A stretch of 63,720 bases of DNA, filler included, from Octopus bimaculoides (lineage: Eukaryota): assembly GCF_001194135.2 (NCBI RefSeq). It is 7 parts of 7 records of this genome, joined end to end, with 100 filler letters (N's around TTAATTAATTAA, not from the genome) between each part and the next. Parts side by side here need not be neighbours in the genome. Positions count along the whole stretch, not along the records: positions 1 to 25,455 come from NC_069000.1; 6 more parts are not named here. The stretch is one strand, 5' to 3'. Made by a program: the position numbers and the translations under genes. The notes below the pieces were generated by a model. The model saw only the letters and a program-made list of their open reading frames with translations. It was not told where the DNA came from and did not search any database. The stretch's first letter is position 1. Each line of letters starts with the position of its first letter. Below, piece by piece: positions 2,554-23,856 of this stretch.

Positions 2554-3080
2554 GTGAGTTGGTCACGTGTTACCTTTTCTGTTTCCACCCTTAACATTTC
2601 TTTCTCATTTTTGATCTGGGCAAATGGCTTCTGATTATACCCTCAGGCTCACTCAATTTCTGCTTCAACAAGCTGGCATGGATTGGATGGTTTGACAGGA
2701 GCTGACCAATTGAAAAGCTGCCCATGTTCCATGTCTGTTTTGACATGTTTTCGATGTCCTTCCTAATGCCGGCCACTTCACAGAATGTACAGGGTGCTTT
2801 TTCACAAGGCATTGGCATGGGTGCTTCTACATGGCCCTGGCACTTTTATGTGACACCAGCATGAACACCTTTACATGACACTGGCATGGGCCTTTTTATG
2901 TAGCACCATATATAATAACATAAAATGGGCTTTTCCAGTTTGCATCTACCAAATCCATTCACAAGGCCTTAATTGTCCTGAGACAAAAGTAGAAGACAGA
3001 CACTTGCTCAAAGTGCCATCCACTGGCACTGAACCTTAGACCACACCTACACCTATGATTTTTGATATTCTTGCATTTTA

Positions 3081-3300
3081 AGGCAGTGAGCTAGCAGAAT
3101 GGTTAGCACACCAGGTGAAATACTTAGCAACTTTTCATCTGTCTTCACATTCTGGGTTCAAATTCTGCCAAGGTTGACTTTGTCTTTCATCCTTTCAGGG
3201 TCGATAAACTAAGCACCACTGAAACCCTGGGGTCAATGTAATCAACTCATCTTCCCCCCCCCCCAAAAAATGCTGCCCTTGAGGCAAAATTTGAAACCAT
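3081..3300 (+). mobile_element. SINE family B (AGGCAGCGAGCTGGCAGAATCGTTAGC... type) with an (ATT)n tail
   Basis: Recurs many times in the window, e.g. 1860-2065(-), 12869-13015, 23340-23558(-), 28985-29190, 42645-42866(-), 47228-47640(-), 49215-49443(-), 53270-53475(-) and three copies in 54470-55130(-). Confidence 0.8.
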
Positions 3301-3319
3301 TATTATCATTAATATTATT

Positions 3320-3857
3320 AGCAGGAGTGGCTGTGTGGTAAGTAGCTTGTTTACCAACCACACAGTCCCGGGTTCAGTCCCACTGCGTGGCACCTTGGGC
3401 AAGTGTCTTCTACTATAGCCTCGGGCCGACCAAAGCCTTGTGAGTGGATNNNNNNNNNNNNNNNNNNNNNNNNNNNNNNNNNNNNNNNNNNNNNNNNNNN
3501 NNNNNNNNNNNNNNNNNNNNNNNNNNNNNNNNNNNNNNNNNNNNNNNNNNNNNNNNNNNNNNNNNNNNNNNNNNNNNNNNNNNNNNNNNNNNNNNNNNNN
3601 NNNNNNNNNNNNNNNNNNNNNNNNNNNNNNNNNNNNNNNNNNNNNNNNNNNNNNNNNNNNNNNNNNTATATATATGTGTGTGTATGTTTCTGTGTCTGTT
3701 TGTCCCCCCAGCATCGCTTGACAACCGATACTGGTTTGTTTTTGTCTCCATAACTTAGCAGTTCGGCAAAAGTAACTGATAGAATAAGTACTAGGCTTAC
3801 AAAGAATAAGCTCGAGGGTCGATTTCCTCAACTATAAAGGCTGTGCTCCAGCATGGC
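3320..3857 (+). mobile_element. tRNA-derived SINE family A (internal (TA)n(TG)n tract, gapped)
   Basis: A-box-like TGGCTGTGTGGT and B-box-like GGTTCAGTCCC head; conserved 3' body ending GCTCCAGCATGGCC. Confidence 0.85.
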
Positions 3858-4050
3858 CGAGGTCGACTGTGCCTTTCATCCTTTCAGGGTCGATAAATTA
3901 AGTATCAGTGGAACACTGGGGTCGATGTAATCGACTTGTTCCCCTCCCCACAAATTTCAGGTCTTGTGCCTAAAGTAGAAAGGATATTCTTGCATTTTGA
4001 ATGCTGCACAGTATCTTTAATTTCTTTCTTTTTCTTTTCTATTTGTTTAG

Positions 4051-4173
<123 letters not shown>

Positions 4174-4597
4174 CAGCAGTGCTGGATATATATTTCCTTA
4201 TATGCACCCACACATTCACGCACATGTATACGCATATACATACACACACCTTCAGAAATGCATGCTCGCAAACATACACAAGTCTGAATTATATTGAAAT
4301 AAATAAATAAGTTTATATATATATATATATATATATACATTTGTACTATACATTCATACCTGCAAGCATAAAGAGAGAGAGAGCTGTGTGTCGTGGAGGG
4401 TGTTGATAAATCCTGCAAAGGTCAACTTTGCCTGTCGTCTTTTCGGAGATGATAAAATAAGTACCAGTCATATACTGGGGTCAATGCAATCAACTTTCCT
4501 CTCCTTTCAAAATTATTGGCCTTGTGCCAATATCAGAAAGAGTTACCATTATATTTTTTATTGTTGTCATTGCTTTTTTTTTATATATATATATATA

Positions 4598-4918
4598 TGG
4601 TAAGTAGCTTGCTTACCAACCACATGGTTCTGGGTTCAGTCCCACTGCGTGGCACCCTGGGAAAGTGTCTTCTACTATAGCCTCGGGCCGACCAAAGCCT
4701 TGTGAGTGGATTTGGTAGACGGAAACTGAAAGAAGCCCATCGTATATATATATATATATATATATNNNNNNNNNNNNNNNNNNNNNNNNNNNNNNNNNNN
4801 NNNNNNNNNNNNNNNNNNNNNNNNNNNNNNNNNNNNNNNNNNNNNNNNNNNNNNNNNNNNNNNNNNNNNNNNNNNNNNNNNNNNNNNNNNNNNNNNNNNN
4901 NNNNNNNNNNNNNNNNNN

Positions 4919-4949
<31 letters not shown>

Positions 4950-5166
4950 GTGTGTGTATATGTTTGTGTGTCTGTGTTTGTCCCCCCAACATCGCTTGAC
5001 AACCGATGCTGGTGTGTTTACGTCCCCGTAACTTAGCGGTTCGGCAAAAGAGACCGATAGAATAAGTACTAGGCTTACAAAGAATAAGTCCTAGGGTCGA
5101 TTTGCTTGACTAAATGCGGTGCTCCAGCATGGCCGCAGAGTCAAATGACTGAAACAAGTAAAAGAG
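4598..5166 (+). mobile_element. tRNA-derived SINE family A
   Basis: Same head and body as the other copies; the gap falls in the internal microsatellite. Confidence 0.85.
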
Positions 5167-7212: not shown

Positions 7213-8223
7213 GTACCACAGCTTCAGGTTGAAACAAGCCAAAGTACAACATTAAAAGCTCATATTGTTCTCAAATTTAAACTCTTGTATGCTGCAATAA
7301 AATCAGGAATTCAAAAGTTTCAAGAAATACCTTTCTATGAAGAAATGCAAAAGACAAAAGAAAAGAGCAATAAAAAGAAAAAAAATGAAAACCAAAAGTG
7401 TTCATTGATAATGCTCAGTAAATAGGTTACAAAGCTATTTATTCAGTATTGTCAAAAAAATATTTCATGTTATTATTTTCGTTCTGAGAAAGAACTCACC
7501 TCCGAAACGTCATTGGTATTCCACATCTCGATCACAGGGTAGAAATATATTCATGTTCTCAGATTTTATTTAATCTCTCTTTCATTTTCTCTTTTTAATA
7601 TTTATTTATTTATTTATTTATTTTTGGTAGCAGCAGGTTACTGTCAGTTATTATTGGAGATGGGTTATATACATGTGTGCGTGAGTGTTTATATACATAC
7701 ATACATACATACATATATAATGTATATATGCATATATACATAAATTTATATATATATATATATATATGCATATATATGTATATGCATATACTTATATACA
7801 TATGTACATATCTGTGTGTGTGAGTGTGTGTGTATTTCAGTTTTGAAATTAATCAGTCACATTTATTGTTGGAGTTGCAAATATGAGTAAAGAGGTCATA
7901 TCGATTCTGGGGGAAAGGAAACATACAGAAACATATATGTGATTCAGGATGTTTTAAATATTATCCTCAAAATGAACTGAGAGTAGCTCAACAAAGTGAA
8001 ATAATAAAGATGAACATTGACTGCACTCCCCGCTCACCAGTGGCTTATTTTTGATTCTGTGATTATCACAAAACCTCCATGATGATAATTATCATTTAAA
8101 TTTGCAGGAAGATAGAACCTTGTCTTTCAGAACTTTTCCAAATATATAGCAGTGTAACTGCGCTCAATGTTGTTATCTTGAGTTCAAATCTGCTGTAATT
8201 AAATCCTCACCATACATAACAAT

Positions 8224-8435
8224 TTAATCCTTTAGTGTTTAAACTGGCCATATTTTTTTATATTCAAACTGGCTAGATCTGGCTTCTCACACTTAACCCA
8301 CAATATCATTCTAAAAATGAACGATTACACCATCAAAATCTTGACATTACAAGATAATGCATGGTTAATTCAAAACCTTATGAATAAATAAGCATCACAT
8401 TTGACAGTAATCTCAATGCGTAATGGTTGGGTTAA
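8224..8435. mobile_element. TTAA-flanked non-autonomous element abutting the formin stop codon
   Basis: TTAA-TCCTTTAG ... GGGTTAA. Homologous copies lie at ~11300-11514 and ~11515-11714. Confidence 0.65.
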
Positions 8436-9557
8436 ACAGCCATATATGCCATATTCTCGTGGGCGTGAACAATTCTTTTGTTAGATTCTGATGTCGAAGG
8501 ATAACCATTTACTTGTAAACCATTAACTTTGTCCGAGAAGTAAGAGTTTTGTGGGATTTCTCTAAATTGATGATTGTATATGTTATTGAAAGATTCAAAT
8601 TCATTTGGTTGATATTCAGTCTGTAGATAAGCATTATTAGTGATGTTGTTTGCTATCATATCCAACTTGTTTTGGGACGCCATTTTGTTAATCTTCATGT
8701 TGTGTGTCGCTGATTCTGGAAACGTACTTGCCCGTTTGTTGAACCTGTCGTAGCTGTCGGAGTATTGGTGTATGGTAGGATAACTGTGTAGTGGTTCGAC
8801 AGCAGCAATAAAGTCATTGTGATGATTAAGTCGCAAAGCATATTCCTCTTCTTCACTGCTAGCATTGTCGTAATAATCTGCCATCTTTAACGGAAGCGAT
8901 ATTGGTGTTGTTGTTGTTGTTGGTATTGGTGTTGATGTTGTCGGTTTTGAAATGGCAGTTGTTGATGAGAAGAGGTTTCTCCGTGACGAAGCCACTGGTG
9001 GAACAGACATTACTTGCTTTGCATCGGAAACAGGTTCGTTTGACCTGGAAGGTGTTGCTAATTCACAGGTGTCCTTAGCTTTTTCAAACCGTTCTATGAG
9101 TGAACTTATTGATGGAGCACTGAGAGGAATTTTCTCATTAGGCGTTCGCTGCCTTGATACCTTTTCAGTTGGATCAATATCTCTCGTTCGGCTACTTTCA
9201 TCTGGGTGAAGGTCTCTCATTTGGTTACCTCCATCACGCATCTTCATTTGAGAGTAATTGTAAGCACTTGAGCTTCGATACTGGCCGTTAGATGACGCTG
9301 TACTCATCAAAGGTACTTTTGAATGAGTTAGTGAGCTAATCCAATTCTTACTTTGGCTATTCTTCGAAACGGTGATGCCACTTATGTTATTAACTGTTGA
9401 TAAGTGATTGTTGTTTGTGGTAAAGTATTTTCGGCTCTTATTTTGAAGTTCTTGAGCGTAGCTTCCAATACCAAATGACTGTCCACCGTTACCAACGTTC
9501 ATCCGAGGGTCTTGATTCTTTTTCTGCTGCTGTTGTTGCTGTTGCTGCTGCTGTTGT

Positions 9558-9589
<32 letters not shown>

Positions 9590-11047
9590 TTGAGAATGCA
9601 GTTGCTGGTTGCTAGCAGTTGTGTAGGGCAAAGATTTACTTGGGGCAGGAGCACATTTCAACCAGTTCGTGGGTACCTGGTTATCTACGCCATACAAATC
9701 TAAATGGGGGTTTTCAAAACTATTGATATCTTTATCGACTGATATCAAAGTTCGATCACTGGGTCGACTGGAATTGAATGCTTCATGACCGTCTGCAAAC
9801 TGTTTTGTTGTAGAAACGAGTTCGTTCTCATTCTGGTAATTCAGATTAATTTTTCCCTCGTTTCTAGTCTTCCTACCAGGATCTGAACAGCTTTTATGTG
9901 CTAAGGAATTAGACTGATGGTGAACCAATGGTCCATTGAGGGGTGGCTTCACACAGTTTTCGATCTTAGATTCTGCAGGAAATGTATGGTTGTTCGTCAG
10001 TGAGTTTCCTTCATAGCGTAGATTAATTTCTTTTGAGGGAGCAGATTTTGTTGAGTGATTCGAAACTGGGTGCGACTGATAAAGATGATCTTGATGTGAA
10101 GGGAGATGTTTCTGGTTTGGTAAAGCTTGCTGGGGGTTTGATTTTGATGAAATAATTGTAAAATTTGGATTTGTCTGAATTTGTTCCTGATTAGCTGAAG
10201 TCTGGACTGGCCCAGTCGATAATGTTTTAGAATCCCGACATTTCGTGTAAATTTTAGGGGCTCGCACAGTTTCCTCACCTGTGTTGCCTGACTGGGTAGG
10301 TGGTATGGATTTAAATGCCATCATTTTTGTTTTGTCTGCATTGAGTTTTGTGTTTGCCTGGTTGTGTTCAGTCGAGTTTTGTTTCGTTTGCTCTCGTTTC
10401 AACCACGATTTAAACAAATGCTGTGTTGACCTTTTGAGAAAAGGCTCCGTATTAGCTGATGGAACCTCTGCCGTGGACATTGGTGACATTACTTGAGAAG
10501 AATAAGCCTCTTTGAGGTTATCATTGATGACTTCCGTGGGTGCGGTATTCATATGGAGAGTATGTGATGATCCAAATGGGCTTTGGTTTATATAGTTATG
10601 CACTACACCATTTGCTGTGAGCTGGTTACCCCCAAACCTTGAAGGACTGCTCTCAAAACTATTTGGAAGAGGGTTCATTGGTTTTGGTTTATGAATATCA
10701 GACGTATTTGGTGGACGCGATGTTAAGGGTTTTGGTGGGGACTGAGTAGGGATTTCATGTAAATCATCTCTAGTTTTGAAAGTCTTTAGATGTATTGCGG
10801 AAGGATTAGCATGTGTGTGTTGATGAGGGTGACTCCGCCTGTCTGCTTTGCTTAGTTTCGGAGGTAAATTATGGAATCTGTTGGATGCATTGTCAGAGGA
10901 GAGACACGCTTCTTCAGCGCTGTCTTCCCAGTTTTTAGGTGGGATGGATGGGGGGTTTTCTAACTTCTCTTTCGGTTTGCGACTCCTGGGGGGCAAATCT
11001 GGACCACTATGGCATTGTGGAGCTCTGGTCAATCTGTTGCCACTGAT
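8432..11047 (-). CDS. Formin gene: giant terminal exon, 871-aa low-complexity tail (ISGNRLTRAPQ...ENMAYMAV*) with PxxP motifs and an H7/Q15 run
   Basis: 2.6-kb stop-free frame. Acceptor TATTCTGTCTATTTGCAG|ATC at 11048/11047, phase 0. The link to the FH2 exons is inferred because the preceding exon ends inside an N gap. Confidence 0.8.
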
Positions 11048-11299
11048 CTGCAAATAGACAGAATATAAATTACTACTACTACTACTATTACTACTGCTGC
11101 TACTACTACTGCTGCTGCTGCTGCCACTACTACTACCACTACTACAACTACTGCTCCATTTACTATCCAGCATCAGAACAACAGATTTTTATTCCAAGAT
11201 TCCCAATAAAGTTATAAAGTTATTCAATCTTTGTTTTAAAATACCAAAATGTTAAAAATCATCGCTGACCAACATGTTTCATATCTCTGATTTGCGATG

Positions 11300-11714
11300 C
11301 ATTTAAACCAGCCATATCCGGCTCAGATATTCAACCTGTTTTATATTCAAACCGGCCAGATCCGGTCTTTTGCATCTTCCTTACAATGCCATTCTAAAAA
11401 TGAACAACCACATCAGCCAAATCTCGAAACTACAAGATAATGTATGATTAATTCAAAGCAACGTGAATAAATAGCATTTCATTTGTCAGAGTAACCTGAA
11501 CACTAAAGAGTTAAATTGCCTAAATCTGACCCAAATATTCTACCTGTTTTATGGTCTGATCTGGCCTCTTACACCAAACCTATAATGTCGTTTTAAAAAT
11601 AAAGAATCGCATCATTGAAATCTCGAAACCACAAGTTAAAGCATGATTAATTAATAGCAATATAAATAAATAAACATTACATTTGACAGAATGATCTGAT
11701 TGCTGAAGGGTTAA
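11300..11714. mobile_element. Two tandem partial copies of the same TTAA-ended element
   Basis: Shared CATTCTAAAAATGAAC...CAAGATAATG.ATG.TTAATT...CATTTG.CAG blocks, ending GAGTTAA (11514) and GGGTTAA (11714). Confidence 0.6.
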
Positions 11715-12626
11715 ACGAATGAACAAGTAGCCTAGATCAGTTGTTTTCCAGATATGACCATCTCGTCTTTCTTCAGTTTAGCATATCTAGTGCCAGACAC
11801 ATTGTTCAATATGCAACATTGCTGTTTGTTTAAGATGGTAGAGTGAAGTTTCATGGAAATTTACCTGCTATTTCTAGCATTCTGAATGAGCAAGAACTGG
11901 CAGTGGAGTATTTAGAGTATGTGCTGTCCTTAAATTCGTTCCCCTCCTCCGCCTCTTATACAAAAGAAGAAGGATCAAAGGTCATTCCCAGGTCAAAGGC
12001 TCATAAAGTCGGTTCCCCGGATTCTGTGGTGTATATATATCTCTTTTATTCTTTTACTTGTTTCAGTCAATTGACCTGCGGCCATGCTGGAGCACCACCT
12101 ATAGTCGAACAAATCGACCCAAGAACTTATTCTTTGTAAGCCTAGTACTTATTCTATCCGTCACTTTTGCCGAACCGCTAGGTTACAGGNNNNNNNNNNN
12201 NNNNNNNNNNNNNNNNNNNNNNNNNNNNNNNNNNNNNNNNNNNNNNNNNNNNNNNNNNNNNNNNNNNNNNNNNNNNNNNNNNNNNNNNNNNNNNNNNNNN
12301 NNNNNNNNNNNNNNNNNNNNNNNNNNNNNNNNNNNNNNNNNNNNNNNNNNNNNNNNNNNNNNNNNNNNNNNNNNNNNNNNNNNNNNNNNNNNNNNNNNNN
12401 NNNNNNNNNNNNNNNNNNNNNNNNNNNNNNNNNNNNNNNNNNNNNNNNNNNNNNNNNNNNNNNNNNNNNNNNNNNNNNNNNNNNNNNNNNNNNNNNNNNN
12501 NNNNNNNNNNNNNNNNNNNNNNNNNNNNNNNNNNNNNNNNNNNNNNNNNNNNNNNNNNNNNNNNNNNNNNNNNNNNNNNNNNNNNNNNNNNNNNNNNNNN
12601 NNNNNNNNNNNNNNNNNNNNNNNNNN

Positions 12627-12684
12627 AATGCTTGCAATCTTGCAAGAACTGAACCCACAACGAGAAGAAGAGCTGGGTTGATTC
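12627..12684 (-). CDS. Formin FH2 last-helix exon, partial (runs into the gap): ESTQLFFSLWVQFLQDCKH
   Basis: TTTATTTTTAG acceptor, phase 0. Resembles FMN2 EVSPNAFFSIWHEFSSDFK. Confidence 0.88.
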
Positions 12685-13127
12685 CTAAAAATAAATGAAT
12701 AAAAATTGAAAAGGAGAGTTAGTAAATTATTCCAGAGTAGGAGAAAGAGAGAGCGAGAGAGAAGAGGGAGAGAGGTGTAAAACAGCAGGCGCTTCAATGA
12801 TGACAACCACCACTTGATTATCATTATCGTTACAACAACGACAAAGATGACGATATCCATTATAATTAAGGCAGCGAGCTGGCAGAAATGTTAGCACGCC
12901 GGGTGAAATGCTTAGCGTCTGCCGCTACGTTCTGAGTTCAAATTCCCCAGAGGTTGACTTTGCTTTCATCCTTTTGGGGTCAATAAATTAAGTACAAGTT
13001 ACGCACAGGATGCGCAACACAGTAAATTATTATTATTATTGCTACATATACGGCAGGAATTGGAGAGATTGAAAATTGGCAGCCAAACAGCAGCGGCACC
13101 AACAATAACAATTTTAAGAATACATAC

Positions 13128-13225
13128 TTTGCTATTATTTTCAAAGGAGAAAAAAATCTGTGTTTTCGAAGTATAGCTTTTGGTATCTTGCAGGAACTTC
13201 TTCTGCTCATCCAAAGTCTCCAAAG
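13128..13225 (-). CDS. Formin FH2 exon: (A)LETLDEQKKFLQDTKSYTSKTQIFFSFENNSK
   Basis: CCTTTCAG acceptor and GTATGT donor; 98 nt, phase 1 to 0, compatible with both neighbours. Confidence 0.88.
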
Positions 13226-13380
13226 CTGAAAGGAATTAAATAAAAACGTAGACAGATTAAGGAAATTAGACTTTGTGTTGGAAATGTCGTTATCAAACAG
13301 TCTGGCAGTATTTATAGCCCTTCCCTCTTGAGGTTCTGAAGTAAAACCCAACCGGTGTGTCAATCTTTAAATTTGTCAGA

Positions 13381-13444
13381 ATGATGTAGACGCCTCTGAT
13401 GAGAATCTAGTAAGGTTCGAAAATCGATTAATGTTGTTCATCAT
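13381..13444 (+). ncRNA. Minimal type I hammerhead ribozyme candidate (Penelope/retrozyme type)
   Basis: CUGAUGA 13396-13402; 6-bp stem II (GAAUCU/AGGUUC); GAAA 13419-13422; palindromic stem III AAUCGAUU; UUA cleavage triplet. Stem I is weak proximally, with a distal AUGAUG/CAUCAU pairing. Confidence 0.5.
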
Positions 13445-13449
13445 TTTTT

Positions 13450-13623
13450 AGGCACGGGAGTGGCTGTGTGGTAAGTAGCTTGCTTACCAACCACATGGTT
13501 CTGGGTTCAGTCCAACTGCATGGCACCTTGGGCAAGTGTCTTCTACTATAGCCTCAGGCCGACCAAAGCCTTGTGAGTGGATTTGGGAGACGAAAACTGA
13601 AAGAAGCCTGTCGTATATATGTA

Positions 13624-13654
<31 letters not shown>

Positions 13655-13701
13655 NNNNNNNNNNNNNNNNNNNNNNNNNNNNNNNNNNNGTCGTATATAT
13701 G

Positions 13702-13734
<33 letters not shown>

Positions 13735-13942
13735 ATATGTTTGTGTGTCTGTGTTTGTTCCCCCAACATCGCTTGACAACCGTTGCTGGTGTGTTTACGT
13801 CTCCGAAACTTAGCGGTTCGGCAAAAGAGACGGATAGAATAAGTACTAGGCTTCCACAGAATAAGTCCTGGGGTCGATTTGCTCGACTAAAGGCGGTGCT
13901 CCAGCATGGCCACAGTCAAATGACTGAATCAAGTAAAAGAGT
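13450..13942 (+). mobile_element. tRNA-derived SINE family A
   Basis: Near-complete copy. Further copies or parts: 17418-17720, 20620-20790(-), 25560-25908(-), 31770-32105(-), 41904-42220, 45087-45464, 52327-52741. Confidence 0.85.
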
Positions 13943-14164
13943 ATAATAAAGGTAGTGTTTTGAATAGACAAACAATAAAGGTTTAAGATTCTGCCATTTT
14001 GTCACCAATGAAATGATTGGTTTCGAACTAATAAATAAGTAAAATGAAAGTTTAAGGAAAAGGATTTAATTGGTTTAGTCACCGCTGAAGACGTTGTCTT
14101 GGCATAGTACGGTGAATGATAAAAAAAAAATCGAATAGAATCTATATATTTTAAACAAGCTCAC

Positions 14165-14243
14165 CAGCCATAAGGAAGCGTTCTACAGCCGTCTGGAAAT
14201 TTTCCACTTGCTTCGAGTTGTTGCTTTGTAATCCGGAGTGAAT
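14165..14243 (-). CDS. Formin FH2 exon: IHSGLQSNNSKQVENFQTAVERFLMA
   Basis: CTCTTCACAG acceptor and GTGAGC donor; 79 nt, phase 0 to 1. Resembles FMN2 HMQPFKENMEQFIIQA. Confidence 0.88.
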
Positions 14244-15208
14244 CTGTGAAGAGAGGAACAAGAAGGATTTGAATTCATCAGTTCAAGGGTAATTTTGATG
14301 GTCTTCGAGACCCATCGTCCCCACATTAAAGGCTGAAACCGAAACTGTTGAGTTGAAATTTTATAAACCGATTGCTGGGATGAATATAAGTGAATGTGTC
14401 AAGTGGGGCTAAATTGATGGAATATGTCGTAATTAGTTCAAAAGTCAGCTCATGAAAGAATTCTGGAAATTAAATTGCAATGAAGAACAGGGAAGTTTCA
14501 AGCCTTTGTCATTTATCCGAGAGGGAGAGAAAGAGAGAGAGAAAGCGGTATTATTTTCGTCATAGGCTTTCTCTTCCTCTCTCCTCCAAAACTTCTAAAT
14601 GCTTGGTGCTTCACTCTTCAAGACAACTGAACTTTTACCAATGTAATCCATCACCGGTTTCCTTAGATGGCAGACAGATAGACAGAGACAACGACAGACT
14701 GACAGACAGACAGAGACACAGAGAAAGAGAGAGAGAGGGGGGAGAGGGAAACAGATAGACAGAGACAGACAGACAGACAGATAGACAGACAGAGAGAGAG
14801 AGAGAACTAGGCGTAGGTAGGAATTATTTGGTAAGGATAATGGAAGGAAATATTTTCAGAATGCGACGCTGGGATTGGAACTAACATGATGATAATCTTC
14901 AAGTGAGAGATGCTTTCGTTGTATGTACCTCGTATATAGGCAATAGGACATTAAGAAACATACATTCATATTGGTAACAGATCGTTGATGGTATATTGTC
15001 AGTCGCATGTAAAATGCATTGTAGATTCGCTTCGGGCACGTTCTAATTGCACTGTAAGCAGACTCTCTGTAAAAACACATGTTGGGTACAGTCTGGGTAG
15101 TTTGTAGCATATTGCGAACAACGTGGTTGCAGTAACATTTTAGATGCTACGTAGATACATTGTAAATATAAGGCAACGAGTAATTAGAATGGAGAGAGAG
15201 AAATATAC

Positions 15209-15277
15209 CTTATTGCGCATGTTAATCAGTTCGTTTTTCCATGAATAAAGATTTTTTGTCATATCATCGAAAGATAC
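15209..15277 (-). CDS. Formin FH2 exon: VSFDDMTKNLYSWKNELINMRNK
   Basis: CTATCTTCAG acceptor and AAG|GTATAT donor; 69 nt, phase 0 to 0. Resembles FMN2 MKFEDFQKDLRKLKKDL. Confidence 0.88.
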
Positions 15278-15387
15278 CTGAAGATAGAAAAAACACACAC
15301 ACACAAATATAGAAAGAATTAAAACATACATGCAAATACGCACACACTTAGTATGAACCACACACACACACACACACACACACATAC

Positions 15388-15434
<47 letters not shown>

Positions 15435-15644
15435 NNNNNNNNNNATTCTGCCGAGGTCGACTTTGCCTTTCATCCTTTCGGGGTCGATAAATTAAGTACC
15501 AGTTACGTACTGGGGTCGATGTAATCGGATTAATCCCTTTGTCTGTCCTTTTTTGTCCCCTCTGTGTTTAGCCTCTTGTGGGCAATAAAGAAATAAGATA
15601 GATAGATAGATAGATAGACAGATAGATAGATAGACAGATAGATA

Positions 15645-15928
15645 GTGCCACGTAAAAAGCACTGGTGCTGGTGCCACGGTAAAAGCACTGATGCTGGTGC
15701 CACGTAAAAAAGCCACTGCTGTTGGTGCGACGTAAAAATATCTAGTACACTGTGTAAAGTGGTTAGCGTTAGGAAGTGCATCCAGCTGTAGAAACCAAGC
15801 CAAAACAGACTATGGACCCTGATGCGGTCCCTGGCCTTACCGGCTTTTGTCAAGCTGTCCACCATCGTCGTCATCATCATCATCATCACCATCTTCATTT
15901 AATGTCCAGCATGGAAAACGGACGTTAA

Positions 15929-15978
<50 letters not shown>

Positions 15979-15990
15979 GATGATGACGAT
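15645..15990 (+). mobile_element. Dispersed repeat with a (GAT)n tail (RTE-type LINE 3' end or derived SINE)
   Basis: GTTAG..GGAAGGGCATCCAGCTGTAGAAAC...CATGGAAA.CGGACGTTAAATGATGATG recurs at 30055-30320 and 41633-41782. Confidence 0.6.
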
Positions 15991-16033
15991 GATGATGATG
16001 ATGAACAGAATGGATTTGAGGGTAGGAACTTAC

Positions 16034-16162
16034 CTGAGATGCCTGCCGAAGCATAGCTGGGTTGGGAAATGGAAACGCCTTCATTGAATAGAAATCAGGT
16101 GTGTTTTCGTACGTTTGGCAGTAAACCATTATTATGTGTTCTAATAAATTTCTTTTGTTAAA
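16034..16162 (-). CDS. Formin FH2 exon: FNKRNLLEHIIMVYCQTYENTPDFYSMKAFPFPNPAMLRQASQ
   Basis: TTCTCTGCAG acceptor and CAG|GTAAGT donor; 129 nt. FPFPNP..L.QASQ matches the FMN-subtype FPLPEPQDLFQASQ. Confidence 0.92.
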
Positions 16163-16616
16163 CTGCAGAGAAAAGAAAACAGACCAAAATAAGTAGATTG
16201 AAATTCAAAACTAAAATCTGGCTACAACTTTAGATAAATTTTCAATGAGAAATTCCTCATTTTTGATCCAATTGTCTTTAAAAGCAAAAGTGGGGACTTC
16301 TTTTTTTATTGGGTTGTTACATAAATTCGTTACTTTTCTTTTGTTTATTCTGTGTGTGTGTGTGTGTGTGTTTGCCCCACACCACCGCTTGATAACCGGT
16401 GTTGATTTATTTACATGCTCGTAACTTAGTGGTTCGGTAAATGGCCCCGATAAAAAAAAAGTTCCTAGCTATAAATCAATAAGAACTGGAAGGGATTTCT
16501 TCAACTAGACGGTACTCCAGCATGGCCGCAGTCCAATGACTGAGACAAATAAATAAGTCAACGACAAAAGATAAATGATAAAAGATGGAAGGTGTTTTAT
16601 TTTATTTATTACTTAC

Positions 16617-16746
16617 TTTTGCGAAAATATCTTTGAGATTTGAAAGAATGTCTAACTGGAAGCCATTTGCTTGACCGAGACAAGAACCTCTGTTGAGATA
16701 GTTTCCAACGCTTACAATGGCACTCAGAAGATTCTTCAATGGTAAA
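16617..16746 (-). CDS. Formin FH2 post exon: (S)LPLKNLLSAIVSVGNYLNRGSCLGQANGFQLDILSNLKDIFAK
   Basis: CTTTTTCAG acceptor and GTAAGT donor; 130 nt, phase 2 to 0. Contains the diagnostic GNYLN...GQAxGF.L..L..L.D motif of FH2 domains. Confidence 0.95.
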
Positions 16747-16887
16747 CTGAAAAAGACAATGGGAATGGATGAATGGTTAATACGAACACAAGAATAAGCT
16801 GCTCCAACAATTTCACTAACATTTCTAAATTAAACAAGAATTTCGAAAGATTTACTGAAATCACTCAAAAGCATTTCGTTTACGGGT

Positions 16888-16929
<42 letters not shown>

Positions 16930-17455
16930 NNNNNNNNNNNNNNNNNNNNNNNNNNNNNNNNNNNNNNNNNNNNNNNNNNNNNNNNNNNNNNNNNNNNNNN
17001 NNNNNNNNNNNNNNNNNNNNNNNNNNNNNNNAATTTTTTTTTTAATCGTTCCGATCACTGGACTGTAGTCATGCTGGGGCACAGCCTTGAAGGGTTTTAG
17101 TCGAACAAATCGATACCCAGTAATTATGTGGGTTTTTTTTTTCTTTTAAGTCTGGACCTTAGTCCCTTTTGCTGAACCACTTTGTTACGGGGACATCGAC
17201 AAATCAACGGGTTGGGGAATAGACACACACACTCACATTAATGATTGCAGATTCAGTACTACACCTGAATAAGGATCTACTTTTGGATGTTGCTGGAAAT
17301 TTAATGATATACGTACGTTATTTCCACAACAACCCCACTCAATACTTCATTTCAAAAGTCTGCGTTATCAATAAACCCTGAGTCGTTAGCGAACACTTCA
17401 GGAATTTTAATATAGAAAGGCGCAGGCGTGGCTGTGTACTAAGAAGATTGCTTCC

Positions 17456-17491
<36 letters not shown>

Positions 17492-18589
17492 GTGTGTGTG
17501 CGCGCGCGCTTGTCCCCACCGCCACCACCACCGCTTGGCAACCGGTGTTGGTGTGCTTACGTTCCCCATAAATTAGCGGTTCCAGAAAAGTGACTGATAG
17601 AATAAGTTCCAGGCTTTAAAGAAAGCATGTACTGGGGGTGATTCACTTGACAAAAATACTTTCGAAGGCGTTGCTCCAGCATGGTCGCAGTCGAATGACT
17701 AAAACATGTAAAAGATAAAAAATAAAAGGTATTTCCGACTAGATTATTTATAACAGATTTCGAGTGGTTAGACAACCTGTGAATGTAATGCAGATGTTCA
17801 TTAGGTTCACGGTAAGGATAGATTAAGCCAGTGATAACATCAAGAGATACACTGAGAAATGTAAACTTAGAGATCATTTCTAAATAAATACAAATATCAA
17901 AGTCTTTAAAGAGTTCGTGTAATCCTTAAGTAGCCTTCTGAAGATTAAGTAGTTAAAATTAGTGACAGTAAGAGCATTGTTTCGGCATAAACTTCCGCTA
18001 AAACCTCGAATTTATCTTTTAACTGGTACAATATAAGTAGTCCAGCACATACATACATACATACATACATACATACATACATACATACATACATACATAC
18101 ATCGCATCACAAGTAATTAGCTTATTTGATTTTTCTCCATCCATTAATTCAAGAGTTAACCTTTGCTGCATTTCTCATAGCTATACTGAAGAGCTCTAAT
18201 AAAGCCTAAACGTGTCTAAAGTTGTCACCGCACTTTCCTTGCTCCACACTGACATTTTTAAATCTATTTGAAGTATGTGATTGCCTTCTTTGCTTCAATA
18301 CATACGTTATTTGCCTTTCTTCATATGTAATCATCAACATTAATCAATTTTCTCATCATTACTGATCTAATTAAAATTGATTAAATATTTTGTTGTTCCT
18401 GTACAAACATAATCCTTGCTAGACTTATCCTATGAAAGTTTAGTGTTTTCGACCACGGACACAATGCGTTGACTGGTGCAGCATGCGAATTTTTGATCCC
18501 TTGGTCCGTTCGTGGGTACCGGACTCTGTCAGACATGCTAGTTGTAAGTCCACTGGATATTACTGTCCCGAGATAGGGACTCATAGGGC

Positions 18590-18810
18590 CGGTTACCTGA
18601 TTTCCAAGATGCATAAGTGACCACGATCACAACATACCCGCTGAACGAGACACCCGTCCGACGCAGGGGACAACCATTTAGAGCTGAGTGGAACGGGACT
18701 GGAGCAATGTGAAACGAAGTGTTTTGCTCATGGACACGACTTTGGGGGTCGAAACCACGATTTTGCGATCGTGAACGCGACGCTCTAACCACTAGACCGC
18801 GCGCAATCAC
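18590..18810 (-). mobile_element. tRNA-derived SINE family C with a conserved central domain
   Basis: Head GCGCGCGGTCTAGTGGTTAGAGCG...GGTTTCGACCCC, then GAGCAAAACACTTC.TTTCACATTGCTCCAGT. Related copies at 28043-28305(-), 44190-44520(-) and 53544-53770(+). Confidence 0.7.
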
Positions 18811-18917
18811 CAAGCAAATACCCTCTCTTTAGAAATGAGACAGTTCTTATAGTTTCTCAATCGTTTTCTTTAAATACAGAGCAAGGAGTTTTGAAGGAAT
18901 GTTTTTTAGTCTCATAC

Positions 18918-18966
18918 CTGTTATATAATTCATCACAGGCGGCGTGTACGGCTCGTAGGCGTTGGT
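18918..18966 (-). CDS. Formin FH2 exon: (D)QRLRAVHAACDELYN(S)
   Basis: TTCTTTTCCAG acceptor and AG|GTATGA donor; 49 nt, phase 1 to 2. Gives the canonical L..V..AC.EL..S..L..LL helix. Confidence 0.9.
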
Positions 18967-19231
18967 CTGGAAAAGAAAGAAACAATCGTAAAACAGTCGC
19001 ATGTGATTGATATAATAATTTGTTTATAATTGAGGAACATGAACAGCATCTTTGAGGACAAGAGATTAATTAATATAATCGACCCTGGGATATGACTCGT
19101 AGTATATTTTATCGACCTCGAAAGGATAAAAAGCAATGCTGATCACGGCGGGATTTGAACGTGAAGAGACGGAGTGCTGTGAGTATTTTTGTTCTATGTA
19201 CTGACGATTCCGCACACTTGTCGCCTTATTG

Positions 19232-19282
<51 letters not shown>

Positions 19283-19454
19283 ACATACACGCAAAAGTAT
19301 ACTGACATGCATACAAACACATACACATACATACATACATACATACATACAGACACATACACACATATATACATATATACGTACATGCATACATGTATGC
19401 ATACATACATGCATACATACATACATACATACATACATACATACATACATACAT

Positions 19455-19575
19455 ACAAAAATACCCTGCTGTTGATGTTGAAATTACAGTGAAGGGACCT
19501 TGGATCTAGGTTAGAAACCGGTTCTTTCTCTATTAGCAAGAAATCATGAAATAAACTGAATAATGACATACATAC
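19455..19575 (+). mobile_element. Extremely 5'-truncated 3' end of the (CATA)n-associated R4-like LINE
   Basis: CCTGCTGTTGATGTTGAAATT...AGAAATC.TGAAATAAACTGAATAATGA matches the 3' UTR copies at 26290-26600(-); embedded in (CATA)n on both sides. Confidence 0.6.
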
Positions 19576-19764
19576 ATGCATACATACATACATACATACG
19601 TACATACATACATACATACATACTTACATACATACATACATACGTACATACATACACAGATGCATGAACGGTGGAGATCCTATCAGAAAATAATAATTGT
19701 AAATAACTCTAACGACAATAACAACAGCAACAGTAACAATGCGTGGCGAAGGCCACATACTAAC

Positions 19765-19881
19765 CTGTTTCAAACATTTCTGCCAGTAGTCTTAATTTGA
19801 AGCGTAGAAAATCTAATCTTTCACGTAACAATTCCATACTTGAAAGTTCCGACATGAGGTAATCAGAGCAGTTGATTGGTG
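19765..19881 (-). CDS. Formin FH2 exon: (S)PINCSDYLMSELSSMELLRERLDFLRFKLRLLAEMFET
   Basis: TTTATTTCAG acceptor and CAG|GTTAGT donor; 117 nt, phase 1 to 1. Matches the FH2 coiled-coil EL..I..L.ERL..L.F pattern. Confidence 0.9.
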
Positions 19882-20895
19882 CTGAAATAAATAACATCAT
19901 TTTAAAGTTATCTCTACAGACACTCTATAGAATTTAGAGTATGCACAGAAAGTTACGATGTTTCGTATACGAATACGTATATATATATATATATATATNN
20001 NNNNNNNNNNNNNNNNNNNNNNNNNNNNNNNNNNNNNNNNNNNNNNNNNNNNNNNNNNNNNNNNNNNNNNNNNNNNNNNNNNNNNNNNNNNNNNNNNNNN
20101 NNNNNNNNNNNNNNNNNNNNNNNNNNNNNNNNNNNNNNNNNNNNNNNNNNNNNNNNNNNNNNNNNNNNNNNNNNNNNNNNNNNNNNNNNNNNNNNNNNNN
20201 NNNNNNNNNNNNNNNNNNNNNNNNNNNNNNNNNNNNNNNNNNNNNNNNNNNNNNNNNNNNNNNNNNNNNNNNNNNNNNNNNNNNNNNNNNNNNNNNNNNN
20301 NNNNNNNNNNNNNNNNNNNNNNNNNNNNNNNNNNNNNNNNNNNNNNNNNNNNNNNNNNNNNNNNNNNNNNNNNNNNNNNNNNNNNNNNNNNNNNNNNNNN
20401 NNNNNNNNNNNNNNNNNNNNNNNNNNNNNNNNNNNNNNNNNNNNNNNNNNNNNNNNNNNNNNNNNNNNTATATATATATATATATATATATATATTATGC
20501 TCTCGTCCCTTTTTGTCGAAGAGCGTGGGTTCGAAACATCAAAGACTTTTCCATGATTCCCAGCATCAAACTAATACACCTGCTTCGTCTCACCTGTCTT
20601 CGTCTTTTGTTTTCTATAAATTTGAAGAATATAAATATATGTGGGACGGGTTTCTTTCAGTTTCCATCTATCAAATCCAATCACAAGTCGGCTTGGGGCT
20701 AGAGTAGAAGACTCTAGCCAAGGTGCCACGTAGTCGGACTGAACCCGGAACCATGTGGTTTGGAAGTAAACTTCTTACCACACAGTCATGTTATATGTTT
20801 ACATGTAAGACCTGTCTCAACATATCACATATAACAATGAAACAGTATAATGAATAACGGTTAGAGAAAAGAATCCAGTATGTAAAGCTACTTAC

Positions 20896-20975
20896 AATTG
20901 GACATTTGTCTGTCTCTTCTGTTAATTTGTTCAGGGTCTCTTCCAGTTGACATTAGGTGAAAAAGCTCAGCTAAA
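20896..20975 (-). CDS. Formin FH2 exon: (S)LAELFHLMSTGRDPEQINRRDRQMSN
   Basis: TTATTTTGCAG acceptor and GTAAGT donor; 80 nt, phase 2 to 1, compatible with both neighbours. Confidence 0.87.
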
Positions 20976-21513
20976 CTGCAAAATAAGATTACAACTGTTT
21001 AAATTTAATCAGTATAAGGATTCTACGTGGTCGTTACACCTACCTAAAATGGTAGCAAATTCTCCAACGAATTCCAACTTGGCGTCTTATGAAAAGGAAA
21101 AAAAAAGTAAAGTGGAAATGATAAGAAAGTCGTTGTAGGGATATCTTTGATTATAAATGTTTGTTCGATCAGGCTCAAGTTGGGTGCAATAGTAACAATG
21201 GGGATGACAAGGAAGATTAAAATAAACCTAGATGACAATGAATTTCAACTAATTAACGTTAGTTGTTTGACTTTGACTAATTAGTGCCAGCTGTTGGATT
21301 TCGACCAATTAACGTCAGTTGTTCGATTCCGACCTGTTAGTGTCAGTTGATCTATCAACTAGATGACCTACTCCCTAAATATAAATGTGATATATGTGAG
21401 CATGCGTGTGTGTCCACGTGTATGTATGTATGTATGTATGTATGTGTACATGTAAGAGACAAGGAGAGAGCAGCTTGCTTGTATTGTCTAGTTTGGGTAA
21501 AGAATGAAATTAC

Positions 21514-21650
21514 CTGATAGGATTTGCGAACCGTAGGGTCTCTATGGATAGAGTCAACAAAGCTTGGACTACGTCCCCATAGGTACACTTAATTTGTTTC
21601 ATGTGTAGGACCATTTCTTGATTCTTCACCGGATCCAAGTTTGAGCTCAA
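21514..21650 (-). CDS. Formin FH2 knob exon: LSSNLDPVKNQEMVLHMKQIKCTYGDVVQALLTLSIETLRFANPI
   Basis: ATCTTACAG acceptor and CAG|GTAATT donor; 137 nt, phase 0 to 2. Aligns without gaps to FMN2 [31 protein letters not shown]. Confidence 0.9.
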
Positions 21651-21715
21651 CTGTAAGATTAATATATGGACAGTGAAAATATATATATATATAGACAATT
21701 TTCAACTCTAATATG

Positions 21716-22202
21716 TACCGTAATATCAGCGTTTTACGGTAATATCAGCGCCAAGCAGTGTTTCGGCATAAGCGAACTTTAGGTTAGTTAAAATATGTTT
21801 ATGACATATTTTAACTGCAGTTGATGTGGAGAAAAATTTCTCTACTTGACGCTGATATTACGGTAATTTCCACGACCTCAGCGGTTTACTGGCGCAAATC
21901 AGTCAATGGTGTTCACTGTATTTTAGCTAAAGACATGGCTTTGATAAGGTCTGTTCAGAGTTTCCTCTCTTAGGCATTTCCCATTGACAAACAGCTAAAC
22001 AGCTAGAAACATCAATATTTGGGAATCCGACAGGAGACGACACTGGACAGATATGGTGTTTTTACACCTTTTTACCACAAGAGAGAATTTTTCGCCACGT
22101 AACTGGATTTGCCTTTTAGCAGTTGAAATATGTCACAAATATTATTAAGTAACATAAAAGTCGCTTGCGCCTAAAAACTGCTTGGCGCTGATTTTACGGT
22201 TA
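21716..22202. mobile_element. Nested TA-flanked MITE with long TIRs
   Basis: Perfect 17-bp inverted pair TACCGTAATATCAGCGT at 21716-21732 and 21849-21865, plus an ~90-bp imperfect inverted arm at ~22110-22200. Related sequence at 57120-57170 and 57715-57851. Confidence 0.65.
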
Positions 22203-22363
22203 TAGACAGACAGACAGACAGACAGACAAACGGACGGACGAACGAACGGACGGACAGACGGACGGACGTTCAGACAGACGGACGAACGAACGTTCAGACA
22301 GACAGATAGACGGACGGACGGTCAGACTGACAAACTCATAGATAGATAGATAGATAGATAGGC

Positions 22364-22440
<77 letters not shown>

Positions 22441-22488
22441 TACATACATACATACATACATACATACATACATACATACATACGTATG

Positions 22489-22517
<29 letters not shown>
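22203..22517. repeat. Compound tetranucleotide microsatellite (AGAC/GGAC/GATA/CATA then TATG)
   Basis: Directly visible; (CATA)n is followed immediately by its reverse complement (TATG)n at ~22480. Confidence 0.95.
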
Positions 22518-22520
<3 letters not shown>

Positions 22521-23568
22521 AGGATCAAAAATCTTACTGATATTTCAAAATTTCAGCTTTTGCATTCTACAGCTGTTTCCACAGCTAAAATATTAACATC
22601 GTTGTCTATATAATCATTACATACATACAATTAAGTAAAAAAAAAAGTATATTATGTAGTAGAAGAAGAAGAAGAAGAAGAAGAAGAAGAAGAAGAAGAA
22701 GAAGAAGAAGAAGAAGAAGNNNNNNNNNNNNNNNNNNNNNNNNNNNNNNNNNNNNNNNNNNNNNNNNNNNNNNNNNNNNNNNNNNNNNNNNNNNNNNNNN
22801 NNNNNNNNNNNNNNNNNNNNNNNNNNNNNNNNNNNNNNNNNNNNNNNNNNNNNNNNNNNNNNNNNNNNNNNNNNNNNNNNNNNNNNNNNNNNNNNNNNNN
22901 NNNNNNNNNNNNNNNNNNNNNNNNNNNNNNNNNNNNNNNNNNNNNNNNNNNNNNNNNNNNNNNNNNNNNNNNNNNNNNNNNNNNNNNNNNNNNNNNNNNN
23001 NNNNNNNNNNNNNNNNNNNNNNNNNNNNNNNNNNNNNNNNNNNNNNNNNNNNNNNNNNNNNNNNNNNNNNNNNNNNNNNNNNNNNNNNNNNNNNNNNNNN
23101 NNNNNNNNNNNNNNNNNNNNNNNNNNNNNNNNNNNNNNNNNNNNNNNNNNNNNNNNNNNNNNNNNNNNNNNNNNNNNNNNNNNNNNNNNNNNNNNNNNNN
23201 NNNNNNNNNNNNNNNNNNNNNNNNNNNNNNNNNNNNNNNNNCATAGCAACGGGAGAAATACCACTAAGCATTTCGTCCAGTGCGCTAACGATTCTGCCAG
23301 CTCGCCGTCTTAATAATAATAAGAAGAAGAATAATAATATTTCTACTCTAGGCAGAAGGCCTTGAAAATTTGGGGAGAGGGGGGGATAGTCGATTGCATC
23401 GACTCCAGTGCGTAACTGGTACTTTTTTCATCGACCCCCAAAAGGATGAAAAGGTAAAATCGATCTCGGCGAAATTTGAACTCAGAACGTAGCGCTGGGC
23501 GAAATCCCGCTTAGCATTTCAGTCGGAGTGCTAACCATTCTGCCAGCTCACCGCCCTAAAAGTTAAAC

Positions 23569-23614
<46 letters not shown>

Positions 23615-23816
23615 TCATTACAATTTTGGCACACGAGCAGCAATTTTGATTACATAGAAGCCAGGTATTTGGTCGGTATTTATTTTATCGACCCCCGAGA
23701 AGATAAAAGGCAAATATATGTGAATATGTGTGTAAGCATAAGTAATAAAGGTTTCAGCAGAGTTTTTTTTTTTATCACAAAGGGAAATACACAATATAGA
23801 GAAGTGCTATAGTTAC

Positions 23817-23856
23817 CTATCGATTTCACAAGTGTCGACTTCTGTTTCCACCAATG
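23817..23856 (-). CDS. Formin FH2 lasso exon, partial: LVETEVDTCEID(R/S)
   Basis: AG|GTAACT donor. The 5' part lies in the 23857-23897 gap, which is preceded on the minus strand by a long poly-T tract. Fits the lasso W..L.E..LD..E.E.LF. A phase 2 to 0 exon is missing between this and 21650, probably in gap 22720-23241. Confidence 0.65.

Follow-up and report, generated by a model that had tools for sequence, protein, structure and literature searches.

The formin gene and its two actin-contact codons

The window analysed here is a stretch of 63,720 nucleotides from Octopus bimaculoides (assembly GCF_001194135.2); the piece under study comprises the 25,455 bases of it that come from NC_069000.1, is interrupted by 12 runs of N, and carries on its minus strand the 3' two-thirds of an intact formin gene. 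The FH2 domain encoded by this gene is of the FMN type and displays a Leu and a Phe where canonical FH2 domains have the knob Ile and the post Lys, two residues required for actin assembly. Visual inspection, tblastn with relatives and a family hidden Markov model (HMM) run over all reading frames served to assemble the exon chain. Ten FH2 exons yield 315 codons in a single open frame with zero stops, to which the last exon adds 871, and 21 of the 21 readable splice sites are canonical (acceptors AG, readable donors GT). The spliced product matches the Pfam FH2 profile (PF02181) as one stretch, covering profile positions 78-370 of 372 with a score of 132 bits (E 3.6e-38; gathering cut-off 34.8 bits). 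The features of the gene, in the order of transcription, are as follows.

21514..21650, minus strand: FH2 exon A (knob helix), LSSNLDPVKNQEMVLHMKQIKCTYGDVVQALLTLSIETLRFANPI; Leu codon CTA (21608-21606) at the invariant knob Ile
20896..20975, minus strand: FH2 exon A2, (S)LAELFHLMSTGRDPEQINRRDRQMSN(S); links exons A and B in frame and is collinear with the family segment SFAELLELL..RD.DKI..HVKRKG
19765..19881, minus strand: FH2 exon B, PINCSDYLMSELSSMELLRERLDFLRFKLRLLAEMFET
18918..18966, minus strand: FH2 exon X, (D)QRLRAVHAACDELYN(S)
16617..16746, minus strand: FH2 exon C (post), LPLKNLLSAIVSVGNYLNRGSCLGQANGFQLDILSNLKDIFAK; GNYLN at 16706-16692 and Phe codon TTC (16625-16623) at the conserved post Lys
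16034..16162, minus strand: FH2 exon D, FNKRNLLEHIIMVYCQTYENTPDFYSMKAFPFPNPAMLRQASQ
15209..15277, minus strand: FH2 exon E, VSFDDMTKNLYSWKNELINMRNK
14165..14243, minus strand: FH2 exon F, IHSGLQSNNSKQVENFQTAVERFLMA; length and phase as in L001 1686-1764
13128..13225, minus strand: FH2 exon G, (A)LETLDEQKKFLQDTKSYTSKTQIFFSFENNSK; length and phase as in L001 2458-2555
12627..12684, minus strand: FH2 exon H, 5' part only, ESTQLFFSLWVQFLQDCKH; runs into the assembly gap 12190-12626 after 58 bases
8435..11047, minus strand: last exon, a low-complexity tail of 871 residues with the family motifs in family order
10741-10670, minus strand: tail motif SPPKPLTSRPPNTSDIHKPKP, conserved in the family
10420-10382, minus strand: tail motif HLFKSWLKREQTK, conserved in the family
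9130-9080, minus strand: tail motif IPLSAPSISSLIERFEK, conserved in the family
8467-8435, minus strand: C-terminal HAHENMAYMAV, the family C-terminus
8432..8434, minus strand: stop codon

The coding sequence is touched by one gap only, 12190-12626, which takes the 3' part of exon H. In the distant relative L001, a cephalopod-like contig, this exon (7359-7487) has a length of 129 bases, that is 24 more codons or 71 bases beyond the 58 of the window, and ends in phase 0; as the last exons of both L001 and the window start in phase 0, an open frame across the gap is plausible, the sequence itself being unread. The first-pass annotation of this DNA had described the reading frame and the splice sites as intact, which holds for all that can be read and leaves the gap in exon H aside. 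Four other gaps (13655-13689, 15435-15444, 16930-17031 and 19999-20468) are intronic, with flanking exons that join in frame, while a fifth (22720-23241) is located upstream of exon A. Misfitting phases between exons A and B and between B and C had suggested that two small exons were hidden in runs of N; this was ruled out when A2 and X were found in the read sequence. Two further frames considered as exons, at 20952 (LEETLNKLTEETDKCPIV) and at 18040 (QLKDKFEVLAEVYAE), were dismissed as chance open reading frames (ORFs) that have no acceptor site. Neither tblastn nor the family HMM, applied to all frames of the piece, gave a credible exon upstream of 21650 for the DEP, coiled coil, FH1 or lasso regions, and the gene span first drawn up to 23856 is not borne out, no exon having been found between 21651 and 23856. 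No ORF of note was found downstream of the gene.

Both substituted codons, as first annotated, are read exactly at their positions on the minus strand, the Leu in LDPVKNQEMV-L-HMKQIKCT and the Phe in LSNLKDI-F-AK, where a GTAAGT donor closes exon C and a CAG acceptor opens the continuation FNKRNLL across the junction with exon D. The canonical residues at these sites we take to be those known in Bni1 as I1431 (knob Ile) and K1601 (post Lys). When the window FH2 was compared with the chains of the PDB using phmmer, the Leu was placed opposite INF2 Ile643 (LDAKKSLNLN-I-FLKQFKCS) and the Phe opposite INF2 Lys792 (KLTET-K-SQQNRVTLL) and the Lys of the mDia1 DTKS motif, the INF2 numbering being that of the full-length chain 9azp_G. 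The alignment is gapless at both sites, in agreement with the earlier claim that both canonical residues are replaced, and the formin-2 strings quoted in support of that claim are matched by bat formin-2 (P0026: LLSNKRSQAVG[I]LM and LPKLKDV[K]SSDNSRSL). An identical register was obtained in the phmmer-PDB alignment, in a MAFFT alignment of 144 FH2 domains and in a MAFFT alignment of 11, each time gapless between the KxSQ/LKD anchors and the sites. Of the residues by which FH2 domains are recognised, the window retains GNYLN and GQANGF (for GN[YF]MN and G.ADGF) and has lost the knob Ile and the post Lys. According to the passage of PMC3268721 that cites Xu et al. 2004, the Bni1 substitution I1431A abolishes actin assembly. 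The INF2 I643A/K792A double mutant is described as inactive and gives no actin pull-down (bioRxiv 10.64898/2026.04.09.717539).

A wrong choice of exon, a shifted alignment register or an assembly error could in principle have created both substitutions, and the assembly is indeed gappy, with one run of N truncating exon H. Such an artefact is scarcely credible, since both codons are located well within exons and far from gaps, no alternative GT donor precedes the Phe codon, the three alignments are independent and agree on the register, and eleven independently annotated orthologues (see below) have the same pattern.

Family assignment and phylogeny

A word-indexed homologue search with a rough first concatenation of the exons gave no match, and an exhaustive HMMER search was needed, which returned 462 matches among 1.84 billion representatives. 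The best eleven (E 7e-38 to 6e-27, 34-42% identity) form a distinct set of proteins of 1362-2256 residues, in which the FH2 domain is located in the first half and followed by 660-1270 residues. They come from Patella (XP_050397830), Bulinus, Potamilus, Batillaria, Crassostrea/Magallana, Argopecten (XP_069113506), Lymnaea, Physella, Mactra and Mytilus (XP_076111914), the eleventh being P0013, a Logan transcript placed with the bivalve Mactra by the tree described below. Their database names are 'uncharacterized protein', 'formin-J-like', 'Formin-2' and 'Fmn2p'. The orthologues share a common plan, composed of an N-terminal DEP-like domain, a coiled coil (with the motifs YSDNEKQLIEEM and YSDNEKQLIEEMKRMKKEH...), one PPPLPPRPGRG motif, the FH2 domain, a low-complexity tail and an end of the form hydrophobic-Met-x-hydrophobic. 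In the molluscs the DEP domain scores 25-29 bits, below the cut-off of 32.7. The same DEP-coiled coil-FH1-FH2-tail plan was found in the brachiopod Lingula anatina ('formin-J', XP_013404038, C-terminus VSYMAV), where DEP scores 37.8 bits, above the cut-off, and in the nemertean Tubulanus, and over the family as a whole the tail after FH2 measures approximately 540-1270 residues.

The tail of the window gene carries the family motifs in the family order (SPPKPLTSRPP..DIHKPKP, FKSWLKREQ, SISSLIERFEK and terminal AYMAV), corresponding to the family patterns SPKPLTS..HKP, F.LKSWLKRE and S[IV].SLI.[RK]FEK followed by the C-terminal ending. The conserved C-termini of the family (window, P0003-P0013 and P0020) read AYMAV (in the window), AYMAI, SYMAI, SYMEI, TFMEI, AVMDF, TAMDI, TVMHL, TVMNI and TVLHL, the last having Leu at the position of the Met, and SYMAV in Lingula. 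PDZ ligands fall into established classes, and the hydrophobic-Met-x-hydrophobic end fits the pattern of class II. A match of the tail to Pfam Imm39 (E 0.033) was below the cut-off and was taken as chance.

In a neighbour-joining tree of FH2 domains (309 columns, 200 bootstraps), in which no non-FMN outgroup was included, the window groups with the eleven molluscs at 100%, and these together with Lingula and Tubulanus again at 100%. Within the molluscs, the window is sister to the gastropods plus bivalves (91.5%), the position expected of a cephalopod orthologue, and is, at 34-40% identity to the other molluscs, the most divergent member, on a long branch. An alignment with orthologues and an FH2 tree had been proposed as a check; the gastropod and bivalve relatives now found share the register of the window. 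As judged from the homologue search, the tree and the tail, the window gene is an orthologue of a lophotrochozoan DEP-FH2-tail formin family, which constitutes a second FMN group. It resembles the other members of this group in its orthologous FH2 domain (100% bootstrap), its tail motifs and its Met-x-hydrophobic end, and has, like the other molluscs, lost both the Ile of the knob and the Lys of the post. It differs from them in being more divergent and in having Leu and Phe instead of the commoner Ser or Thr and Gln, whereas Lingula and Tubulanus keep both Ile and Lys.

Matches 12-150 are of canonical FMN type, except Lingula, Tubulanus and one plant protein. The listed matches that include the site share the FMN signature DGFxL[DE]IL.KLKDVK, and vertebrate FMN2 is among those identified by name or C-terminus. 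In the canonical matches, which comprise mollusc and annelid FMN, the FH2 domain is located at the extreme C-terminus and followed by a short basic tail of 9-45 residues (e.g. FMN2 ...DSGIKAKISMKT). The plant protein (P0032, Lactuca serriola KAL7587823), which is unrelated to the finding, has three separate FH2-like stretches in 1021 residues and a His at the Lys column.

The canonical FMN proteins (vertebrate FMN1/FMN2, Drosophila Cappuccino) are the nearest canonical FH2 sequences to the window and share with it the signature GNYMNGG..RGQADGF.L[DE]IL.KLKD and the segment ..PLPEP....QAS.V.F. They differ in that their FH2 domain is C-terminal and adjoins a basic FSI that binds the Spire KIND domain, while that of the window is internal, has no FSI and is followed by 871 residues. 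Canonical FMN proteins also have a long FH1 and an N-terminus without known domain, and their Ile is invariant and their Lys K/R, at the positions where the window has Leu and Phe. The long tail calls to mind FHDC1/INF1, in which a very long C-terminal tail with microtubule-binding activity comes after FH2. FHDC1/INF1, however, is an INF-subtype formin with both Ile and Lys in place, whereas the window FH2 is FMN-type. An INF/FHDC1-type identity was considered in view of the long tail, the likeness of KQIKCT to INF2 KQFKCS and the best PDB match, INF2, and was rejected: FMN-type proteins score far better (E approximately 1e-20, compared with 3e-7 for INF2 in the much smaller PDB set), and the PDB has no FMN FH2 domain.

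The FMN assignment made at first annotation is thus upheld as regards the type of FH2 domain, both by the signature in the listed matches and by the literature, and does not extend to a classical FMN protein. Pruyne 2016 lists C. gigas LOC105320770 and L. gigantea LOTGIDRAFT_237086 as FMN in table and alignment, the alignment also placing C. teleta CAPTEDRAFT_203277 there, and states that the mollusc, annelid and cnidarian FMN homologues form two groups, which were 'not investigated further'; the family described here is the second of these. Another definition of the FMN subgroup requires FH1, FH2 and a C-terminal FSI (PMC11231147); in the window, the basic FSI is absent after FH2, and 871 residues ending in ENMAYMAV are found instead. 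The family shows that the FMN subtype holds a second architecture (DEP ... FH2 ... long tail, without FSI), filed under misleading automatic names, and the window gene adds to it an orthologue that is missing from the protein collections searched. No description of a DEP-domain formin, or of the loss of both residues in molluscs, was found in the literature searched, in which the combination of DEP and formin yielded only Dishevelled/DAAM.

One explanation of the substitutions is that the window copy is decaying or non-functional in this species, while the family is functional elsewhere. Its FH2 domain is the most divergent of all, with the low identity to other molluscs and the long branch already mentioned; no transcript or annotated protein of it was found in the databases searched; and its N-terminal exons were not found in the piece. 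Decay is nevertheless very improbable. In-frame stops, frameshifts and broken splice sites are absent from the 11 exons, 315 and 871 codons are read through, and the sole break is the assembly gap within exon H. Between the window and L001, the introns are unalignable and the synonymous sites saturated, so that dN alone is reported and not dN/dS (0.37 for the FH2 exons and 0.32 for the conserved blocks of the tail), and yet exons F and G are identical in length and phase, exon H has the same start phase, and amino acid identity amounts to approximately 50%. Conservation extends to the tail motifs and to the C-terminus AHENMAYMAV, which is kept exactly. The earlier reading that this is not a decaying gene is borne out by the open frame, by the splice sites and by these shared exon lengths and phases. 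The only relatives of the window gene found together with DNA were P0001 and P0002, and identity in the tail is 37% over aligned columns. In L001 (ENA contig ctg103276l), the intron between exons G and H contains a reverse-transcriptase ORF of 626 residues (RVT_1, 2869-4749).

The other members of the family likewise retain a recognisable FH2 domain. Pfam FH2 scores are 271 bits for the canonical Lymnaea FMN, 243 for Lingula, 237 for Tubulanus, 182-196 for the mollusc orthologues and 132 for the partial domain of the window. The Patella FH2 domain was modelled with AlphaFold2 (predicted local distance difference test, pLDDT, 76.5; predicted template modelling score, pTM, 0.68), and when the model was compared with the PDB, all 31 matches at E<=0.001 were DAAM1, mDia1, FMNL3, INF2, Bni1 or Cdc12, with E down to 2e-13 and template modelling (TM) scores up to 0.7 on core domains. 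The oyster orthologue and P0013 are spliced transcripts, because their whole ORFs of 1583-1685 residues are present on Logan contigs of 5-6 kb.

Constraint at the actin contacts and possible function

In the canonical FMN FH2 domains among the other best matches, the Ile column holds I in 105 of 105 sequences and the Lys column K in 124 of 129, the other 5 having R. The eleven mollusc orthologues have V, S, H, T, F, Y, S, S, T, S and I at the first site and S, Q, Q, V, K, Q, Q, E, Q, Q and Q at the second, whereas Lingula and Tubulanus have I, I and K, K. The substitutions are thus no peculiarity of the octopus gene but common to gastropod and bivalve orthologues, and their presence in molluscs and absence from Lingula and Tubulanus date the event to the mollusc stem. 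In this wider context the trait is more solid, being conserved and not the product of decay, but less singular, since it spans a phylum-level clade already present in the databases.

The loss of conservation is concentrated at these positions. By column entropy, the Ile site, which never varies in canonical FMN, ranks 7th for variability out of 411 columns in the mollusc clade. Canonical FMN has 42 near-invariant columns, and of these the Ile, the Arg that precedes GQADGF and the Lys vary more in molluscs than any other. Two knob neighbours that are near-invariant in canonical FMN are lost in molluscs as well, the Lys of KRSQ being replaced by E/D and the Gly before the Ile by I/V; Lingula and Tubulanus are already variable at these two positions (N/K and A/S). 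All 11 mollusc orthologues retain the two lasso Trp, GN.xN, G.ADGF and most of the other near-invariant columns. This pattern looks like a site-specific release of constraint rather than general decay. As the orthologues have both lasso Trp, we infer that the window FH2 may also be competent to dimerise. A reduction is seen in the FH1 region, too: the 200 residues preceding FH2 contain a single PPP run and 7-9% Pro in the mollusc orthologues and two runs in Lingula and Tubulanus, whereas in canonical FMN the medians are 6.5 runs, 39.5 run-prolines and 29% Pro.

We consider it probable, though well short of assured, that this FH2 domain is under selection, has been released from the canonical barbed-end actin contacts and is kept as a dimeric module with another role. 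What the sequences show is that, in the mollusc branch, FH2 retained the residues that define its fold and dimer, while constraint was lost at precisely those positions that contact actin in canonical formins (the knob K-R...G-I and the post Lys); FH1 was reduced to its single PPP run. On our reading, the protein would no longer act as a canonical processive nucleator and elongator of barbed ends, a loss of polymerisation that we infer from the two substitutions and that gains in weight from the vestigial FH1 and the relaxed constraint at the contact sites. Its FH2 dimer might instead attach to filament sides, to microtubules or to some other partner, with the DEP domain presumably setting the protein at the membrane and the tail motifs and class II PDZ-ligand-like C-terminus recruiting partners. 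The more specific proposal, that a mollusc pseudo-formin arose from an FMN-type formin before gastropods, bivalves and the lineage of the window gene separated and has persisted for hundreds of millions of years as a DEP-anchored dimer off barbed ends, with a vestigial FH1, for side-binding, microtubules or scaffolding, is put forward tentatively, and we hold it to be somewhat less likely to be right than wrong. For the role of a heterodimerising inhibitor, which had also been suggested for this gene, we found nothing in particular in support.

The main alternative is that of a merely divergent FMN-type formin, still working as nucleator and elongator, in which the mollusc contact surface has been re-wired, perhaps through Ile at -1/-2 and nearby basic residues, and the Ile and Lys have become dispensable. 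This could be reconciled with the good conservation and strong Pfam scores of the remaining FH2 domain, with the hydrophobic residues that replace or keep the Ile in the window and some orthologues (V, F, Y, I), with an RII/RIV motif just ahead of this position, with the Lys that the window and Patella have at +2, and with the proline motif PPPLPPRP, kept in nearly all orthologues. We nevertheless judge re-wiring unlikely, if clearly more plausible than either decay or artefact, because hardly any column of the clade varies more than that of the Ile, where S, T and H also occur, which is unlike a contact still in use, because the conserved knob neighbours are lost too (K to E/D, G to I/V), because FH1 is vestigial, and because the equivalent INF2 double mutant is inactive.

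Several observations speak against a release from actin contacts. One orthologue keeps the Ile (P0013) and another the Lys (the oyster protein, P0007), and Leu for Ile, as in the window, is a conservative change, in line with the hydrophobic residues just cited for some orthologues. Ile is found at -1 and -2 in most orthologues, and the window has its Lys at +2 (FAK), so that compensation by neighbouring residues is possible. The mutants described in the passages of the literature cited here are all Ala substitutions, with none to Leu, Phe or Gln. No cephalopod FH2 orthologue in which both codons could be compared was retrieved in the homologue searches. To these are added the missing transcript and annotated protein of the window gene mentioned above, and the fact that FH2 profile positions 1-77 (lasso), FH1 and everything N-terminal fall outside the piece or inside the gap 22720-23241.

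The closest functional precedent, with an FH2 domain kept for a non-actin role, is FOZI-1 of C. elegans, an FH2 protein without actin interaction (PMC3392944), which is FMNL-derived, nuclear, equipped with zinc fingers and confined to chromadorean nematodes (PMC5047451). FOZI-1 has neither DEP domain nor long tail and is of independent origin. If the release from barbed ends is real, the mollusc family would represent a second, independent and far more widespread case, after FOZI-1, in which a non-polymerising FH2 protein originated. Formin biologists mutate the Ile and Lys to kill FH2 and treat them as universal, and here both have drifted in an old, constrained clade. As the sister lineages keep them, the family offers a natural experiment on functions of the FH2 dimer beyond barbed-end tracking, in which the Lingula and Tubulanus orthologues would serve as built-in controls.

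Repeats and low-complexity sequence around the gene

Two repeated elements were found on the piece. An interspersed element of approximately 500 nt is present in three copies (3336-3860, 4598-5138 and 13469-13915) that are 72-93% identical, the third being located in the intron between exons F and G. Every copy is broken by an assembly gap located at a TA/TATG microsatellite inside the element, and these microsatellites are probably the reason for the placement of the gaps. A unit of 94 nt resembling a short interspersed nuclear element (GCCGAGGTCGACTTTGCCTTTCATCCTTTCGGGGTCGATAAATTAAGTACCAG...GGGGTCGATGTAATCGAC) was found at 3167-3260, 3856-3949, 4415-4508 and 15450-15543, with 71-81% identity to the reference copy; ARAGORN detected no transfer RNA in the piece.

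Low-complexity sequence is found within the gene as well as beyond it. Intronic microsatellites of the (ACAT/ATGT)n type (15311-15443, 19218-19671 and 22343-22499, and also 18050-18110) give rise to spurious long YVCMYVCM ORFs. The tail exon contains a His7-Gln15 tract (9589-9524, minus strand), and a poly-Ser run of (AGY)n at approximately 11170-11070, just upstream of the acceptor of the last exon, is intronic, though in frame with the exon ORF. Downstream of the gene, a (GA)n/(AGG)n stretch (1490-1760), which translates as ERERER... and RRRRK..., adjoins the gap 1064-1424.

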